This document shows positions 6,270-35,690 of a stretch of 64,000 nucleotides of DNA, one piece after another; the first letter of the stretch is position 1, and every line of letters starts with the position of its first letter. The position numbers and the translations under genes were made by a program. The stretch is taken from contig CBFFRP010000239.1 in NCBI GenBank assembly GCA_965644295.1, forward strand, positions 123,432 to 187,431. The letters are read 5' to 3'. A model generated the notes under the pieces. It ran no database searches and was not told the DNA's origin. It worked only from the letters and a program-made list of their open reading frames with translations. The stretch is from Paraphysomonas bandaiensis (taxonomy: Eukaryota > Protista > Chrysophyceae).

Positions 6270-7070
6270 GGGAAGAAACGCTACTCTGCTTCCTCGAGGG
6301 GTCCACACAAACTTCTACCCAGAAAACGTAGTACGCGGCGAATCCGGCAAAGAAAACCGTTGATCCTCCGAATCCTAGAGTGACAAGACGGCCTGTGCCC
6401 TAAACCCTACTACCCCGCCCCAGGTCAAGAGCTCCTCCCACAATTGCACTTCCAACTATCACCATACAACCCATAAGTTCCCCCACTTTGGACCCAATGG
6501 TGCCTCAGCAGAGAATCACAGTTGGGTATCAGTCCACTTCCTTTACTTTTCTAACACTTTCACGCTCCCCCCCCCACACAAAACTCTGCCACCAACATTT
6601 ACATTCTACTGATTTACTGCAGTCAGTGGCGCCCTGAGTCTCTACAAATTCTACGTCACTACCTCGCACCATCTCACTTTCCCTCATATAACACTATCCT
6701 CCCATCTACATAACTCTGACCCTCCCTTAAACGTCGTGGACCCTAAAGGGCGTCCCCCTGATCCCCTGATTAACCGCACCTACATTGAAACTGAAGGACT
6801 ACACGTCCGTGGGCAGCTATCACACTTACTTAAAGACTACAATCCTGAAGTCAGCAGATGTCAGATAATATCAACATTCTGCTTGCTCACTGCGTTTGCT
6901 TTGAGCGATAGAGCGAAAGTGGTTGCACCTTGGTGCTTGCGGCGACGCACAAGCAGCGTTCGTAGCGAAAAACAGTAAGATGTCAGAGTTAAGCACTAGT
7001 TAGTTAAATTGTTTTGCTGCCTTACTTCTGACTCTTACACGCCTATCGCTAATAATAAGACGTTCACTAC
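6270..7070 (+). mobile_element. Retroposon family A, copy 1 (decayed ORF segment plus shared structured 3' module)
   Basis: Aligns by eye with the reverse complement of 16691-17380. The 3' ~240 bp (CTGAAGTCAGCAG...GCACCTTGGTGCTTGCGGCGAC...GCTAATAATAAGACGTTCACTAC) is shared with family B. The 5' boundary is approximate. Confidence 0.75.
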
Positions 7071-16690: not shown

Positions 16691-17380
16691 GTCTATTATT
16701 AGCAATAGGTGTGTAAGAGTCAGAAGTAAGGCAGCGAAACAATATAACTAACTAGTGCTTAACTCTGATATCTTACTATTTTTCGCTACGAACGCTGCTT
16801 GTGCGTCGCCGCAAGCACCAAGGTGCAACCACTTTCGCTCAAAGCAAACGCAGTGAGCAAGCAGAATGTTGATATGCCTGACATCTGCTGACTTCAGGAT
16901 TGTGAGTCTTTAAGTAAGTGTGATAGCTGCTCACGGACGTGTAGTCCTTCAGTGTCAATATAGGTGCGGTTAATCAGGGGATCAGGGTGACGCCCTTTAG
17001 GGTAGGGGTCCGCGACGTTTAAGGGAGGGTCAGAGTTAAGTAGATGGGAGGATAGTGTATATGAGGGAAAGTGAGATGGTGCGAGGTAGCGTCGTTGAAT
17101 CTGTAGAGTCTCGGGGTGCCGCTGACTGCAGTGAATCAGTTGGACGTAAATAGAGTTGGCGGAGTCTTCTCCGTTGGAGTTGACGTGTGTGAAAGTGTTA
17201 GAAGAGTAGTGAAAGTGGTTAGTCGCCCAGCTGTGATTCTCTGCTGTGGTATCATACCCCTAGAAGGTGGACAACCGGCGGTTGACCGATTAACCTCCTA
17301 TTACTTGTTCTGGGGGGAAGTCTATATGGAACCCTCAAGGAATCAGCGTAGCGTTGACTGCGATCTTGGAACATCTGCCA
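16691..17380 (-). mobile_element. Retroposon family A, copy 2
   Basis: Reverse complement matches 6270-7060. Tail GCTAATAATAGAC. Confidence 0.75.
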
Positions 17381-23040: not shown

Positions 23041-23069
23041 GTTATACAAAATGTCTGAAGCTGTGAGGT

Positions 23070-23155
23070 CCCTCAACAATGTCGGATTTCTACCTTTTAG
23101 TGGTGTTCTGGGGGATGAGTACCGGAGATATTTCTCCGGTAAACTAACGTGAGCC
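23070..23155 (+). ncRNA. Putative HDV-like self-cleaving ribozyme (partly decayed copy)
   Basis: ACC-TTTTAGT-GGT (P3/L3), perfect P4 ACCGGAGA-TATT-TCTCCGGT, J4/2 CTAAC, P2' GTGAGCC. The 5' strand of P2 is decayed. Confidence 0.5.
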
Positions 23156-23677
23156 GCAAACATCGACAGCAGATATTGTACTCATAGCCGAATGCTTGTG
23201 TGGTACAAGGGACACCAATAAGTGTCATTTGTGTAGACATCTTTGAGCCCTGACGAAAAAACAGGCATCCGGAAATGGGCCCACCTCAAGGGTACCCGAG
23301 ATAGGGCCTACCTCAAGGGCATCCGGGACAGGGCCCACCTCATGGGTAACCGGGGTATTGGGCTGCCTGCTGAAGTCAAGCATCCGGGATGTTCACCTTA
23401 AGGACTCAAAAAAACTGAAGTCAGCAGGTGTCAGGAATATATCAACATTCTGCTTGCTCACGGGGTTTGCTTTGAATGATAGAACGTAAGTGGTTGCACC
23501 TTTGTGCTTGCGGCGACACACAAGCAGCTTCTGTAGCGTTAAGTAGTAGGATAATAGAGTTTGTACTCTAGTTAGTTACAGGTAGACGTCTATATATAGC
23601 TTGACTAGTTTATCTTTAGCTACTAAGCTTATGCTGATTCTTAACGCATATTGCTAATGATGATAGAACTTTTAATA
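23070..23677 (+). mobile_element. Retroposon family B, full-length copy with 14-bp TSD
   Basis: TGAAGCTGTGAGGT at 23056-23069 and 23678-23691. Begins CCCTCAAC; carries a VNTR and the shared 3' module. Confidence 0.9.
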
Positions 23678-24226
23678 TGAAGCTGTGAGGTAGTATTGAT
23701 GTATTGATGTGTGTCCTTACCGTAGACTTGCAACAAATGTAATGTATTAAGTTTGTATCAAAAAATATTTATGTCGTGGGCTGCGGGAAATAGACTCCAT
23801 GCACAAACATACAGTAACTATAATTGAAGGGTTCTACTTATCGCTATAAACTACTAATAAATCTCAGCTATATTATGACATTTTCTACATAAATAGCACG
23901 ATTAGTACGTTTGAGATCTGCCTGAAAGCATAAATCAAAGGTATATCACTCTACGATTATTTTCAGGTTACTCTTTTACTGTCACATAACTTCATATATA
24001 AGTTTTTCGCAACTACATTTTAGCACGTTTTGCTGTCATCATATATGTTCATAATATATATGCTACTGCTATATAAATATATGCGCACCACTGTTATAAC
24101 TTGACAGTGATTAAAATATATTTCCTTCATATTAAAACACGCACACAAACCTAGAAAAAGCCATATGTGAGGCCGTTATCATGTCACGGCACTATCCGTA
24201 TCCGTCGTCGATTGACCAATAACACA

Positions 24227-29061: not shown

Positions 29062-29575
29062 GATATTAATACTTCTTCCGCTTGTGTGATAGGAGTTATT
29101 ACTGTTTTGATACCACTGCTATGATGGCTCTGATATTGCAGTTTTACTTGCGTGTAGTCCAGAGATGTGTACATAGATGACGAGTAGTTGCCAGGTGCTA
29201 GTATCCTGCTGTCGCCCCACTTGTCGAATAGAAGTAATTTATTTCCACATATTACGCACTTTATGACATTGATCACACTGACAATTTGACTTCTTTCTAC
29301 TGTAGTCTATACGACGAAAATTTGTCGATCCTGATAGTTTCAATTTCCAATGAACTACATAGTACTTAGAAGCTTAGAATGTTTTCGCGACTACCAACAT
29401 GACGTAATGTACTGAAAAAGCAACGTTCATATGATGATATTAAAGACATGATTCTTGAATACGTTTTAATTTAATATTCGGTTTGCTCTTATGCATGCCT
29501 GCATGAGGTAAGATCTAAGCAGGGGTGCAACCATTACCACTAGTTTCGGATACTGACTATGTACATGACTTTCTT

Positions 29576-29661
29576 CCCTCAACCAAGTCGGACTCGCATC
29601 TTTTCGTGGTGTTGTGGGGGATAAGTACCAGAGATATTTCTCCGGTAAACTAACGTGAGCC
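29576..29661 (+). ncRNA. Putative HDV-like self-cleaving ribozyme (best-preserved copy)
   Basis: P1 CCCTCAAC/GTTGTGGG; P2 GGACTCGC/GTGAGCC; P3 ATC/GGT with 7-nt L3 TTTTCGT; P4 hairpin; J4/2 CTAAC with candidate catalytic C at 29650. Confidence 0.6.
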
Positions 29662-30214
29662 GCAAACATAGTCAGCAGATTACGTTCTTTCCACTCATTG
29701 CCGAATGCTCGTATGGTACAAGGAACACAAATAAGTGTCACTTGTTTAGACGTCTTTGGGCCTTGACGAAAAAACAGGCATTCGGAAATGGACCTACCTC
29801 AACGTTATCCGGGACAGGGCCCACCTCAAGGATAACCGGGGTATTGGGCTGCCTGCTGAAGTCAAGCATCCGGGACAGGGCCCACCTCATGGGTAACCGG
29901 AGATGAAGTCAAGCATCCATGATGTTCACCTTAAGGACTCAAAAAAACTGAAGTCAGCAGATGTCAGGTATGTATCAACACACTGCTTGCTCACGGGGTT
30001 TGCTTTGAGTGATAGAGCGTAAGTGGTTGCACCTTGGTGCTTGCGGCGACACACAAGCAGCTTCCGTAGCGTTAAGTAGTAGGATAATAGAGTTTGTACT
30101 AGTTAGTTACAGGTAGATGTCTATATAGCTTGACTAGTTTTCATCTAGCTACTAAGCTGGTGCTGATTCTTAACGCTAATAATAAGACTTTCAATTTCAA
30201 TAAGACTTGCAATA
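29576..30214 (+). mobile_element. Retroposon family B, full-length copy with 14-bp TSD
   Basis: TACATGACTTTCTT at 29562-29575 and 30215-30228. Begins CCCTCAAC. Confidence 0.9.
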
Positions 30215-30226
30215 TACATGACTTTC

Positions 30227-31135
30227 TTAATTCATGCAGACCATCACAGAGCAGTTGACATTGTTGATAATAAAGGATGTGACGTCAGTGAGGGTTTGAG
30301 TCACACGTGCCCGTGGCCCAAGGGCAAGAAAGTCTGGAGAACTTTCATTAACGTAATCAGTGATAGCCTGCTTGATATTAACCCCTCTTGGCTGTTGCAC
30401 TAAATGAAACGCGCTTTCAGGTGGGGCGTACTGATCAAGCATATTTTGATAGTGACCTTTCAACAACTCAATACGTTCTCCATCATCGTCTGCATTGAAC
30501 ATGTAGAAGCAGTCCAGTCGGTCTCGTGGGCGAACTAAAGATAAAAGAATGTCCAGTCCTCTGTCTGAATATAGTGTGCCGTCTACCGCCATTGTCCATT
30601 TAATACAACTGTATCTATTTGGGCAAGGTTGTTTAACTATTATATTAGGAAGAAGTATACGCCGCAGGGCCCAGTCACAGTTTGATGAGAGTGGGGCGTA
30701 AAACCCTTTCCCTTTGCGGCCCATGTGTCCCATAACTAGGAAATGAGCAGGGTTTCCACTAGATTTCCAGGATAATATTGCCTCCTGTAGAGTGTCACTG
30801 AATCTTGATCCTCCACGTTTTGCCCATTTAACCTCAGAAAAGTAAGGCGACATATGCTGGGCTAGTTCTTTCTCGTATTTATCTTTCAAGACACTTGCTT
30901 TGAATTGATCTGGAACGCCATCCTGGTCATCGCGATAGGCGTGAAAGACAGAGATGTAGTCGTACTTCTTTCTGAGATGTATACACATCATGAACGCTTG
31001 ATGTGAACTCTCAGACCCATCGATACAACACACGATATGCCTTCCTCCGTTCATGGCGATATCCACCGCCTTGTTCTTGCACATCTCCGAGAACTCCACT
31101 CTGATTTCATCTGCACTGCGCGCAGTATGCTCCAT
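30227..31135 (-). CDS. Tandem universal stress protein (USP) domain protein
   Basis: IVCCIDGSESS, LVMGHMGRKG, MAVDGT, DFLALGPR and NVNCSVMV. Confidence 0.85.
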   Translation of the reverse strand: MEHTARSADEIRVEFSEMCKNKAVDIAMNGGRHIVCCIDGSESSHQAFMMCIHLRKKYDYISVFHAYRDDQDGVPDQFKASVLKDKYEKELAQHMSPYFSEVKWAKRGGSRFSDTLQEAILSWKSSGNPAHFLVMGHMGRKGKGFYAPLSSNCDWALRRILLPNIIVKQPCPNRYSCIKWTMAVDGTLYSDRGLDILLSLVRPRDRLDCFYMFNADDDGERIELLKGHYQNMLDQYAPPESAFHLVQQPRGVNIKQAITDYVNESSPDFLALGPRARVTQTLTDVTSFIINNVNCSVMVCMN

Positions 31136-31466: not shown

Positions 31467-31548
31467 CGACAGCTGCAGGGTTCGAACCTGCGCGGGAATT
31501 TCCCAATGGATTTCAAGTCCATCTCCTTAACCACTCGGACAAACTGTC
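31467..31548 (-). tRNA. tRNA-Ser(TGA)
   Basis: GACAGTT/AGCTGTC acceptor stem, anticodon arm ATGGA-CTTGAAA-TCCAT, long variable arm and GGTTCGAACCC T-arm. A T7 Pol III terminator follows at 31457-31463. Confidence 0.96.
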
Positions 31549-33026: not shown

Positions 33027-33998
33027 ATTGTAGGTGTAGTGATAGATTGAGCGGAGATACCTGTTCTGACTTAATAAACGATACCATTAGCAGATCGCTG
33101 AAATATTTTTCGAAGGGCTAGTGAAAAAAACACAAGCCTAATTATAAAATATTATACGTTCGAAAGATACACTGTAAAAAATGTCATGTTGTACATTATG
33201 TCCCTTATTGAAATAGGATTTTAAATCGCGAAATGTGCTACATACTTACATTTCTAACGAAATACTTGTGCGAGCATATATGAAATGATATGTGCGTTAT
33301 TGAATGTATGAATAATTTATTTTATACTTTCATATATATACATATGTCTTCTGAATCAATTCCTCGAAATTTGAGTGTGCATGGAAAGTAATAGAAATAC
33401 GCACACTTTTAAAAAGTAATATGCGAGAGATTGATGGAAAACGTGCTGTGGAATGCAACTAGCACTTGTGAAATAGAGACTGTTCATGTGACACTTTATC
33501 GGCAGTTCATGCAACAGTTCATATAACAGTTGGTTGAATTGTTGAAATTAACTGAACCTATTCATTATTTAAGACACTTCTCTTGTCTCTTGTTGACTTT
33601 CTCGTGAGCTATAGCTAATAATTGCAATTTAATTGCAAAAAAACATTAGCAATTAAATTGCAATTAATTATTACGCAGCCCTGTTCTCAACGGATTGAAC
33701 TGAACGGGTTAGGGTTAGAACAGGTAGAGGTAGATTCTGTCGCTTGCAAAATTCCTTTGACATGTTTCTTGTCTCTTTCGCAATATTTGTCCAGGAGCCT
33801 CCCGTTTTAGAGATGGGAGTATACTTCCTGGAGTTGTGACGACACTTTTAAGAGTTGTACGACGTTTGTCCGTATCAAAAGCATGTGAAGTATGCAAGGC
33901 GGAGGGTTAGGTAGGGGTTTGTGTGTGATTGTGTAGTGCCGACCACGAGTTTTTAGCATTTGCACTCCGTTGCGATGAAGTGGTTGTTTTAAAATGTC

Positions 33999-34378
33999 TA
34001 GTAGTGAATGCCTGAGTAATAGCAATAGGCGTGTAAGAGTCAGAACTATTTAACTAGTGCTTGACTCTGATATTCTACTATTTAGCGCTACGAAAGCGGC
34101 TTGCGTGTCACCGCAAGCACTAAGGTGCAACCACTTTCGGTCACTGTCCTTGACTTCAGTAGGCAGCCCAATACCCCGGTGCCCTTGATATGGGCTCATT
34201 CCCGGATGCCTGTTTATTCGTCAAAAGACCCAAAGACAACTACGCAAAAGCGACATTAATTTTAGTGTCCCTTGTACCACACAAGCATTCGGCTATGAGT
34301 AGGAATAACGTTTTCTGCTGACTACATATTATGCGGCACTCATCCCCCAGAACACCACGTAAAGGTGCTAGTTGAGGG
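33999..34378 (-). mobile_element. Retroposon family B, internally deleted copy
   Basis: Starts CCCTCAAC and has ACC-TTTACGT-GGT. Tail GCTATTACTCAGGCATTCACTAC. Flanked by TTAAAATGTC (33989-33998 and 34380-34389). Confidence 0.8.
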
Positions 34379-34429: not shown

Positions 34430-35690
34430 TCTAGTATTATTAAATGTTTTCTTATTTTTAGCCGTATACTTGTAAGCTAAAGATACTAAATTCAATAAAT
34501 CCAAAAATTACTAATGCCATTGTTCCACTGTTTGGCGCTACGAAAGCTGTTTTTGCATCGCTGTAAGCATCTAAGTGCAACCGCTTTTGCTTTCGAGGGC
34601 GAGATAAAACATTTATTTGGCTGACATACATACTTTCTTCCTATACTCAACTAGTTGCTATTGTAAAACTAAAACTATGTTCCGATGTACCACTGCAGCT
34701 TCTCTGTAAATTCTTGTATATGATGCTTCGAGTACATGGTTACACATTTCGGATGTTACACTTAATCAGGAGGTCGACTTCTATTGCGCACAAGCTTGCA
34801 CTTCTTAATTATCAGCAGACGTTATTATTAAAGAGACGCAAGTTTGTACGTTGTTACAGCTAACGTAACAACTCCGGCAACACTAAGCATAAAAAGACTC
34901 CAATCTACTTGCTACTACTGCAAGCACCGACAAGTGCTAAACTATATACAACACGATTTAGTTAGCTACAACAACGTGGGCATACGACTAGTTGTATAAA
35001 GCCGGGCTATGAACTCCTGCCCAGTCTACCTGTTTCAGCGCAAACCAAATTTGGTCCATGTCTTCGGCACGTGACTGCTGTATAGTACACACAGAAAGGA
35101 AAGAGGAACGCCATAAAAGTCATACAAATGAACCTCACACTCATGGGGTGTACAATGTCAAAGTCTTGATATTAGCTCAATAACCTGGGTCAGGAGAAAC
35201 CAAGACTAAGTAGTACATGTGTTGTGGGAAAACATTGCCATTGCCGAGCAGCTATGATGAAAGTTTGACGGTTTTCCTCGGTCATTGGTCACACATATGC
35301 TCAATATTGTGAACTAATAGTAGGCATCAATTACTCAAAGCGAACACAGTGAGAAAATTAAATATTAATATATAATATATACCGGATATCTGCGGACTTT
35401 AAAGGATTTTATTCTTTGGGTGAACTCACATCTCGGATGCTTGACTTCAGTATAGGCAGACACACAAACCCTTCAGATGGGACCATTCCTGGATACCTGT
35501 TTATTCATCAAAGCCCTAAACGACGTCGACTTATGTGACACTTATTTGTGTCCCTTGTACCACACAAGCATTTGGCTATGAGTGGGAAGAACATTTTCTA
35601 ATCTCTCTATATTATGCTGTTAGAGAAAATCTGTTTGGTGTGTGTCCCCCACAACGCCCCGAAAAGGTGTGAGTCTAGCTTTGCTGAGGG
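34430..35690 (-). mobile_element. Retroposon family B, old copy split into a 5' part (35411-35690) and a 3' part (~34430-34600)
   Basis: The 5' part starts CCCTCAGC...CTCAC-ACC-TTTTCGG-GGC. The 3' part matches the shared module and B-type tail. About 0.8 kb of unrelated DNA lies between. Confidence 0.6.

Follow-up and report, generated by a model that had tools for sequence, protein, structure and literature searches.

Background

Insects (R2, RTE and Baggins) and trypanosomatids (L1Tc/NARTc and SIDER) are established cases in which LINEs and their non-autonomous derivatives carry an HDV-like ribozyme at the 5' end. As reviewed, both LINEs and non-autonomous elements free themselves from co-transcripts by means of these ribozymes (PMC6765202, PMC3414825, PMC4035085). 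The trypanosomatid ribozyme, L1TcRz, occupies the first nucleotides of L1Tc and NARTc, and also of ingi/RIME and SIDER, and starts with C. It cleaves in vitro, and its P1.1 has been described as one base pair (PMC3185411). The 77-nt sequence, Pr77, is given by the R77 oligo (PMC1874656) and has been proven to act both as an internal promoter and as a ribozyme (PMC1874656, PMC3383444). In Drosophila, the 5' ribozyme of R2 and SIDE frees the element from its co-transcript and fixes its 5' end, and SIDE derivatives, which have no ORF, borrow the machinery in trans (PMC3414825, PMC3774820). A self-cleaving RNA also processes the transcripts of two other kinds of non-autonomous elements, the Sm-alpha hammerhead SINEs of Schistosoma and the retrozymes (PMC6765202, PMC4918200).

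Ribozyme-headed LINEs and non-autonomous elements are therefore already known; the family described here, from a marine stramenopile, is new. In the literature that we searched, no paper connects HDV-like ribozymes with stramenopiles. The reading that we favour, with fair though not high confidence, is that the family is an abundant non-autonomous retroposon, that the element at 29576 is an old copy of it, and that its 86-nt HDV-like head belongs to the class of L1TcRz and is self-cleaving, as we propose.

Results and Discussion

A retroposon family with a fixed 5' end

The window analysed is the whole stretch of 64,000 nt, and all positions refer to it. A first-pass annotation, made from the letters of the window, had listed five copies of the element. 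All five were located (Table 1), four of them start with CCCTCA as described, and the perfect 14-bp target site duplications (TSDs) of the two complete copies can be read directly from the sequence. These two copies share 82-84% identity, and bases 1-300 of the 29576 copy have ~90% identity to the main subfamily. The copy at 33998-34378 has a 9-bp TSD, ACATTTTAA, with a single additional G ahead of its first C; within the window, an extra G between TSD and C1 is seen only there. A tRNA gene lies at 31467-31548 (-; Rfam 58 bits), 1.3 kb from the element, and is unrelated to the head.

Table 1. Copies of the retroposon in the window and features of the 29576 copy
Feature	Position	Strand	Remark
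Complete retroposon copy, 639 bp, non-coding, older long subfamily	29576-30214	+	
5' TSD TACATGACTTTCTT of the 29576 copy	29562-29575	.	read directly
3' TSD TACATGACTTTCTT of the 29576 copy	30215-30228	.	14-mer identical to the 5' one
HDV-like ribozyme head, element positions 1-86	29576-29661	+	covariance model R2, 29.3 bits, E 5.7e-5
P1 5' strand CCCTCAAC, predicted cleavage immediately 5' of 29576	29576-29583	+	genome-wide fixed end
P2 5' strand GACTCG	29591-29596	+	5/6 pairs with 29656-29661, class-anchored positions
P3 (ATC/GGT here; ACC/GGT in family) around 7-nt L3 TTTTCGT	29598-29610	+	
P1 3' strand GTT-(GT bulge)-GGGGG, bulged bases 29614-29615	29611-29620	+	
J1/4 ATA+AGTA; A29621 partners L3 position 3 (T29603) in P1.1	29621-29627	+	
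P4 hairpin, one A.C mismatch in this copy	29628-29645	+	
J4/2 TAAACTAACG, candidate catalytic C of CTAA at 29650	29646-29655	+	position analogy
P2 3' strand TGAGCC, begins 2 nt past CTAA	29656-29661	+	
Internal short tandem-like repeats	29790-29900	+	family D4
3' tail module common to another non-coding family (6845-7006 +, 16745-16914 -)	30015-30100	+	
Second complete copy, TSD TGAAGCTGTGAGGT at 23056-23069 and 23678-23691 (14 bp)	23070-23677	+	
Internally deleted copy, head without J1/2 and P2	33998-34378	-	
Diverged copy, 5' part only, start CCCTCAGC	35480-35690	-	
Old diverged copy, ~75% identity, start CGCTTCAC	~52197-52513	-	

What kind of host carries the family, and what kind of element is it? 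The host had been taken for a non-kinetoplastid, and this is borne out by genes with introns and by nearest named protein relatives in ochrophyte stramenopiles. ORFs of the window match Pfam domains only in part, as is expected from genes with introns. A 658-aa epimerase fusion in the window is identical to an MMETSP/EukProt transcript, and its nearest named relatives are from Ectocarpus, Chrysophaeum, a pelagophyte and Nannochloropsis. The element is not an ordinary tRNA-SINE, again as first supposed: it is non-coding and TSD-flanked, an Rfam search of 29400-30400 up to an E value of 10 found no tRNA, 7SL or 5S head, and an early T4 run lies at element positions 26-29. Classical SINEs are recognised by a head from tRNA, 7SL or 5S RNA with a Pol III promoter, and the head of this family is of a different kind.

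Is the 5' end really fixed, or do the copies of the window merely agree by chance? To this question the genome (62.5 Mb in 669 contigs) gives a clear answer. A first look with the first 100 nt of the element yielded more than 1,700 candidate heads. The best 150 matches to the head model were full length in 150/150 cases, and a whole-genome model search for diverged heads returned near-identical heads only among these best 150 matches. The 5' end is fixed genome-wide at CCCTCAAC. The sequences upstream of 65 distinct copies are unrelated to one another as far as base 1. Exact TSDs with a minimum length of 9 bp (9-18 bp) flank 19 copies, and in 16 of them the TSD adjoins C1; the other three junctions in this sample have 1-3 extra bases, none containing G, so that no extra G recurs at the C1 junctions of the 19 copies. 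Thus the common 5' end noticed in the window, as opposed to scattered ones, holds across the genome by head-model matches, flanks and TSD junctions alike.

The main subfamilies are 477-525 bp long. The window copies represent an older form of 608-639 bp with additional internal repeats, and the copy number of the tandem-like repeats explains much of the length difference. The element ends at a specific AATAATnAGAyTTTCAATA-type motif. Identity between subfamilies is 0.87-0.99 in the head and 0.86-0.99 in the head plus the next ~110 nt; 3' body parts diverge or get replaced, so the head is the better conserved part. Two other non-coding families carry the 3' tail module as well. One different non-coding family in the window, at 6497-7070 (+) and 16694-17255 (-), has no ribozyme head, and its ~160-nt 3' tail module is 85% identical to 29948-30109.

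A separate non-coding family of 1,207 bp begins with the same 88-nt head (L005-L014, e.g. L009:1501-2707). It ends with AATAATCAGATTTTCAATAAT, a motif of the same type as that of the short element, and in L009 it is flanked by a 12-bp TSD, ATGAAAGAGCGT. The ten sampled copies are 98-99.7% identical, which indicates very recent movement and a head in current use. Nested and inverted insertions of the element within heads of other copies were also observed (L020:1460-1503 and L038:1440-1500), one copy being placed after position 40 of an older head.

The head, element by element

The structural elements of the HDV-like fold were found in the head in their usual order. P2, which joins a strand 5' of P3 to the 3' end, has five of six anchored pairs (G21.U81, C20-G82, U19-A83, C18-G84 and G16-C86), with 92% of cells paired across the family. 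P3 has 3 bp, ACC/GGU in the family, around a 7-nt L3 of UUUUCGU, and 96% of its cells are paired across copies. The contact of L3 with J1/4, P1.1, is predicted as U28-A46; it falls on the column pair that covaries in the environmental relatives described below, and is U-A in 35/37 family copies. P4 has 7-8 bp, and the changes between subfamilies leave the stem intact; among them, a substitution together with an insertion gives it a further G-C pair. It is followed by J4/2, GAAACUAA, in which C75 stands at the class position and has a predicted catalytic role. The GAAR-CTAA motif is conserved across the class and in Pr77 of L1Tc. For the family fold as a whole, 91% of cells are paired, as against 35-60% in slid controls.

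How well does the 29576 copy itself keep this structure? Compared with the family head it carries A9C, C24U (which turns a P3 pair into U.G), C39G, G55A (a mismatch in P4) and G71U; the cytosine of CTAA at 29650 is kept. The motifs that the first-pass annotation had listed are present, except that in this copy P3 reads ATC instead of ACC and the 5' arm of P4 reads CCAGAGA. Likewise, the P4 hairpin that it called perfect is so in the 23070 copy and in the family consensus, but not in the 29576 copy.

Comparison with the trypanosome ribozyme

The L1Tc signature quoted in the first-pass annotation matches the sequence of the R77 oligo (PMC1874656). The head and Pr77 have the same order of CCCT at base 1, CACCTnnnCGTGGTG, AGTAC, a hairpin and GGAAnCTAA. 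Aligned semi-globally, the two reach a z of 3.1 against genomic 88-mers, and 62/5,000 shuffles are as good. Placed on the anchors of the class, Pr77 has 7/7 pairs in P1, an A-U pair as P1.1 and 5/6 pairs in P2.

The head thus resembles L1TcRz in being HDV-like, in making up the first ~77-86 nt of its element, in starting with C, in a single-pair P1.1 and a P2 with 5/6 pairs, and in heading several non-autonomous TSD-flanked families. It differs in its host, a stramenopile as opposed to a kinetoplastid, in a P1 that is best read as 8 pairs around a 2-nt bulge where L1TcRz has 7 unbroken ones, and in the spacing of GGTG and AGTAC, which lie 12 nt apart and not 9. The 3' end of the element is a specific motif, unlike the poly(A) of L1Tc-type elements. 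The other systems are further away. R2 inserts site-specifically in rDNA and its core sequence is unrelated; SIDE derivatives, unlike this family, are internally deleted forms of the autonomous element. The Sm-alpha SINEs and retrozymes have the hammerhead and not the HDV fold, and retrozymes proceed via circular RNA.

Environmental relatives and the ribozyme class

Metagenomes were scanned with the pattern CACCTNNNCGTGGTG, 8-14 nt, AGTAC, 12-30 nt, CTAA, which puts no constraint on the 5' strand of P1, on either strand of P2, on the bases of P1.1 or on most of P4. The scan gave 43 loci with 32 distinct sequences. A perfect 7-bp complement for P1, 13-21 nt upstream of CACC, is present in 22/32 of them, compared with 7.7% in shuffles, and P1 occurs with at least 12 different sequences. 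P2 is perfect (6/6 between the hexamer 5' of CACC and the 6 nt starting 2 nt past CTAA) in 19/32, with ten different hexamers; slid controls have 0-1 perfect cases and a mean of ~2.2/6. P1.1 is paired in 29/32 (as UA, CG, GC or UG), which was reached in 0/5,000 permutations.

When 29 matches were aligned under the guidance of the model, 87% of cells were paired in the double pseudoknot, versus 59% after shuffling, and the covariation score of the same alignment is 0.59 versus 0.15 shuffled (0/500). The pairings of P1, P2, P1.1 and P4 all covary strongly in these relatives. Two-sided changes are seen in all seven pairs of P2 and in the pair of P1.1, neither of which is encoded in the model. In one relative, L128 (L128:1-3097 -, contig PDWI01058735.1), the ORF that comes after the head encodes APE endonuclease and reverse transcriptase domains; the nearest proteins to this LINE are unnamed environmental ones with at most 29% identity. 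On the strength of this covariation, and of a relative that heads an APE+RT LINE, the core, judged from sequence, is the mark of a widespread L1Tc-type HDV-like ribozyme class.

Does the family belong to this class? Model R2, built from seven metagenome sequences only, matches young heads of the family with 34-38 bits (E 4e-7 to 5e-6). In the window it matches 29577-29662 with 29.3 bits (E 5.7e-5) and 23071-23156 with 27 bits (E 2e-4); the 33998-34378 copy gives a partial match (E 0.03), and the 52197-52513 copy reaches E 0.057. Besides the family heads, the model finds nothing below E 1 in the 64 kb. The family heads score as high as relatives outside the model (such as L128, L090, L091 and L131). 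Note that these matches are only partly independent, since the scan pattern was derived from the family head and Pr77. The features in register with the class are P3/L3, the 3-nt spacer with AGUAC, GAAACUAA, P4 from the C of AGUAC, and P2 2 nt after CUAA (5/6). With the environmental relatives (for example L097, L120, L121, L128, L131 and L132), the head shares the core, the spacing of P3/L3, J1/4, P4 and J4/2, and the start of P2 2 nt after CTAA; those relatives differ in a clean 7-bp P1, a P2 of 6-9 bp, mostly G after P1, and in coming from other eukaryotes. The HDV-like reading of the head, first made from the sequence alone, gains from an element-by-element fit to a class that includes the active L1TcRz, and from recognition by model R2. 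By its predicted structure, the head is a member of the L1TcRz-type class of HDV-like ribozymes, in a new stramenopile family.

Several negative results might lead one to think that the HDV-like look arose by chance, in what is simply the end of a repeat that has a local hairpin. Rfam gave nothing for the head at the gathering threshold, nor an HDV family at E up to 10; the MFE z-scores of the family are not significant; covariation, which the first-pass annotation had proposed as a check, was no better than in shuffles among 37 family heads (A2) in either P1 register; and the alignment to Pr77 has a z of only ~3. However, the clear environmental ribozymes share these negatives. Rfam HDV models have sub-threshold matches at the exact coordinates in 3/10 of them and miss the other 7, so the Rfam result is uninformative, and their MFE z-scores are null too, as expected for pseudoknots. 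The family is too young for covariation to show within one genome. A model from other organisms nevertheless picks out the family heads and nothing else in 64 kb, and P2, P1.1, P4 and J4/2 all stand at class-anchored positions. A chance resemblance is thus already disfavoured and, in our judgement, highly improbable.

An irregular P1

The main departure of the family from its class is in P1. GGUG and AGUAC are separated by 12 nt, versus 9 nt in 24/32 relatives, and the P1 5' strand of the family has 8 nt. Anchored as in the class, only 5/7 positions of P1 pair, no better than chance. A better arrangement runs from C1-G45 to C5-G41, then skips a 2-nt bulge (positions 39-40) and continues with A6-U38, A7-U37 and C8-G36. 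This bulged P1 has 8 pairs, and 91.9% of its cells are paired across the family. We favour it because it accounts exactly for the three extra bases, keeps the AUA-AGUAC spacing and leaves a Watson-Crick P1.1. It also agrees with the RNAfold centroid, in which positions 1-6 pair with 40-45, and with the free variation of position 39 (C/G/T/A among copies). Model R2 itself sets a 3-nt insertion in the P1 3' strand. The register of the first-pass annotation, C1-G43, with 8 bp and mismatches, pairs 72.2% of P1 cells against 91.9% and has two mismatches in the family consensus; it is kept as a second choice. In both registers the predicted cleavage, 5' of C1, is at the observed end.

The first-pass annotation had also counted the absence of the usual L3 cytosines as a defect. 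It is not one by the standard of this class, where L3 position 3 and the base that follows P1 form the one covarying pair of P1.1. Is the fold then a variant or a decayed form, the two options that were left? Variant is the half that stands, since young active subfamilies carry the bulged form; the 1.2-kb copies, with 99% identity, have the bulge as well, so that it appears to be the working state of an active lineage and not decay. To our knowledge, a bulged P1 is not among the structural variants known to be active in HDV-like ribozymes.

How the 5' end may be made

Since the head falls in the same class as the self-cutting RNA of L1Tc, the element probably cuts its own 5' end. We suggest the following route. 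An element without a promoter-type head would be transcribed within a longer host or read-through transcript. The head would then fold, with P1 formed by 1-8/36-45 and its 2-nt bulge, P2 by 16-21/81-86, P3 by 23-25/33-35, P1.1 by U28-A46 and P4 by 53-59/64-70. The cytosine of CUAA (position 75, window 29650) would catalyse a cut just 5' of C1, which would give all template RNAs one common 5' end. A LINE reverse transcriptase may recognise the shared 3' tail and copy the RNA to that 5' end, and the outcome would be full-length TSD-flanked insertions. Of this route, in vivo folding, the cut itself and the LINE partner are what we infer. An RVT_1 search of the genome gave about 150 places among the matches listed.

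The RNA data are assembled contigs, in which a break at the repeat edge carries no meaning for 5' ends. Metatranscriptome libraries made from poly(A) RNA contain the element. Some of the contigs cross base 1 into differing upstream sequences; this fits co-transcription, and it implies either that not all transcripts are cut or that there is DNA in the libraries.

One further explanation should be considered. The same 77 nt are also a promoter in trypanosomes, so transcription initiation could set a fixed 5' end. The head would then be a relic that no longer cleaves, and the uniform end would come from transcription that begins at C1 under an internal promoter in the head, like that of Trypanosoma cruzi, where Pr77 is proven in both roles (PMC1874656, PMC3383444). 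The irregular P1 and the short P2, compared with the environmental relatives, would suit a relic, as would the RNA-library contigs that cross base 1, and conservation of the head between subfamilies would suit any function. Yet very young copies keep all elements of the class at the right spacing, including P1.1 and CUAA, and the element begins exactly at the base of P1. An extra G, which would suggest capped templates, is lacking at 16/19 junctions. We know of no Pr77-type promoter outside trypanosomatids, and we count this against a promoter here. Promoter and ribozyme functions are, moreover, not mutually exclusive. We therefore regard a promoter-only head as unlikely, although it deserves far more weight than a chance resemblance, and a self-cleaving head as the better account.

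A more general proposal can be put forward tentatively, as a possibility that we do not yet hold to be probable. The Pr77/L1TcRz core may be one branch of an old and widespread 5' module of eukaryotic LINEs, captured here by promoterless SINE-like families with thousands of copies, which would depend on read-through and self-cleavage and use a bulged P1. If the head cleaves, the trypanosome Pr77-type ribozyme would stand for a class spread over distant eukaryotes, a very successful SINE-like family would show that a ribozyme can take the place of a Pol III promoter head, and the bulged P1 would join the known tolerances of the HDV fold. The 29-32 covarying environmental sequences could seed a curated family model, which would be useful because current Rfam models miss most of them. 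New in this study are the covariation of the environmental class, the P1.1 rule, the bulged reading of P1, the count of TSD junctions and the 1.2-kb sister family.

Further observations in the environmental contigs

Second ribozyme copies, found by the model only, lie on the same contigs as relatives at L095:6551-6627 (-) and L094:1426-1512 (-), one of them with CCAA for CTAA. On a TARA contig, model R2 has no match in L133, and another HDV-like fold with a different core, lacking AGTAC, was recognised by eye at L133:300-420 (+). It lies ~500 nt upstream of the ORF of a related APE-RT-RNase H LINE, and the candidate fold has P1 CTGCGG/CCGCAG, L3 TTGCCGA, a P4 UUCG hairpin and P2 GGTGGCC/GGCCACC.
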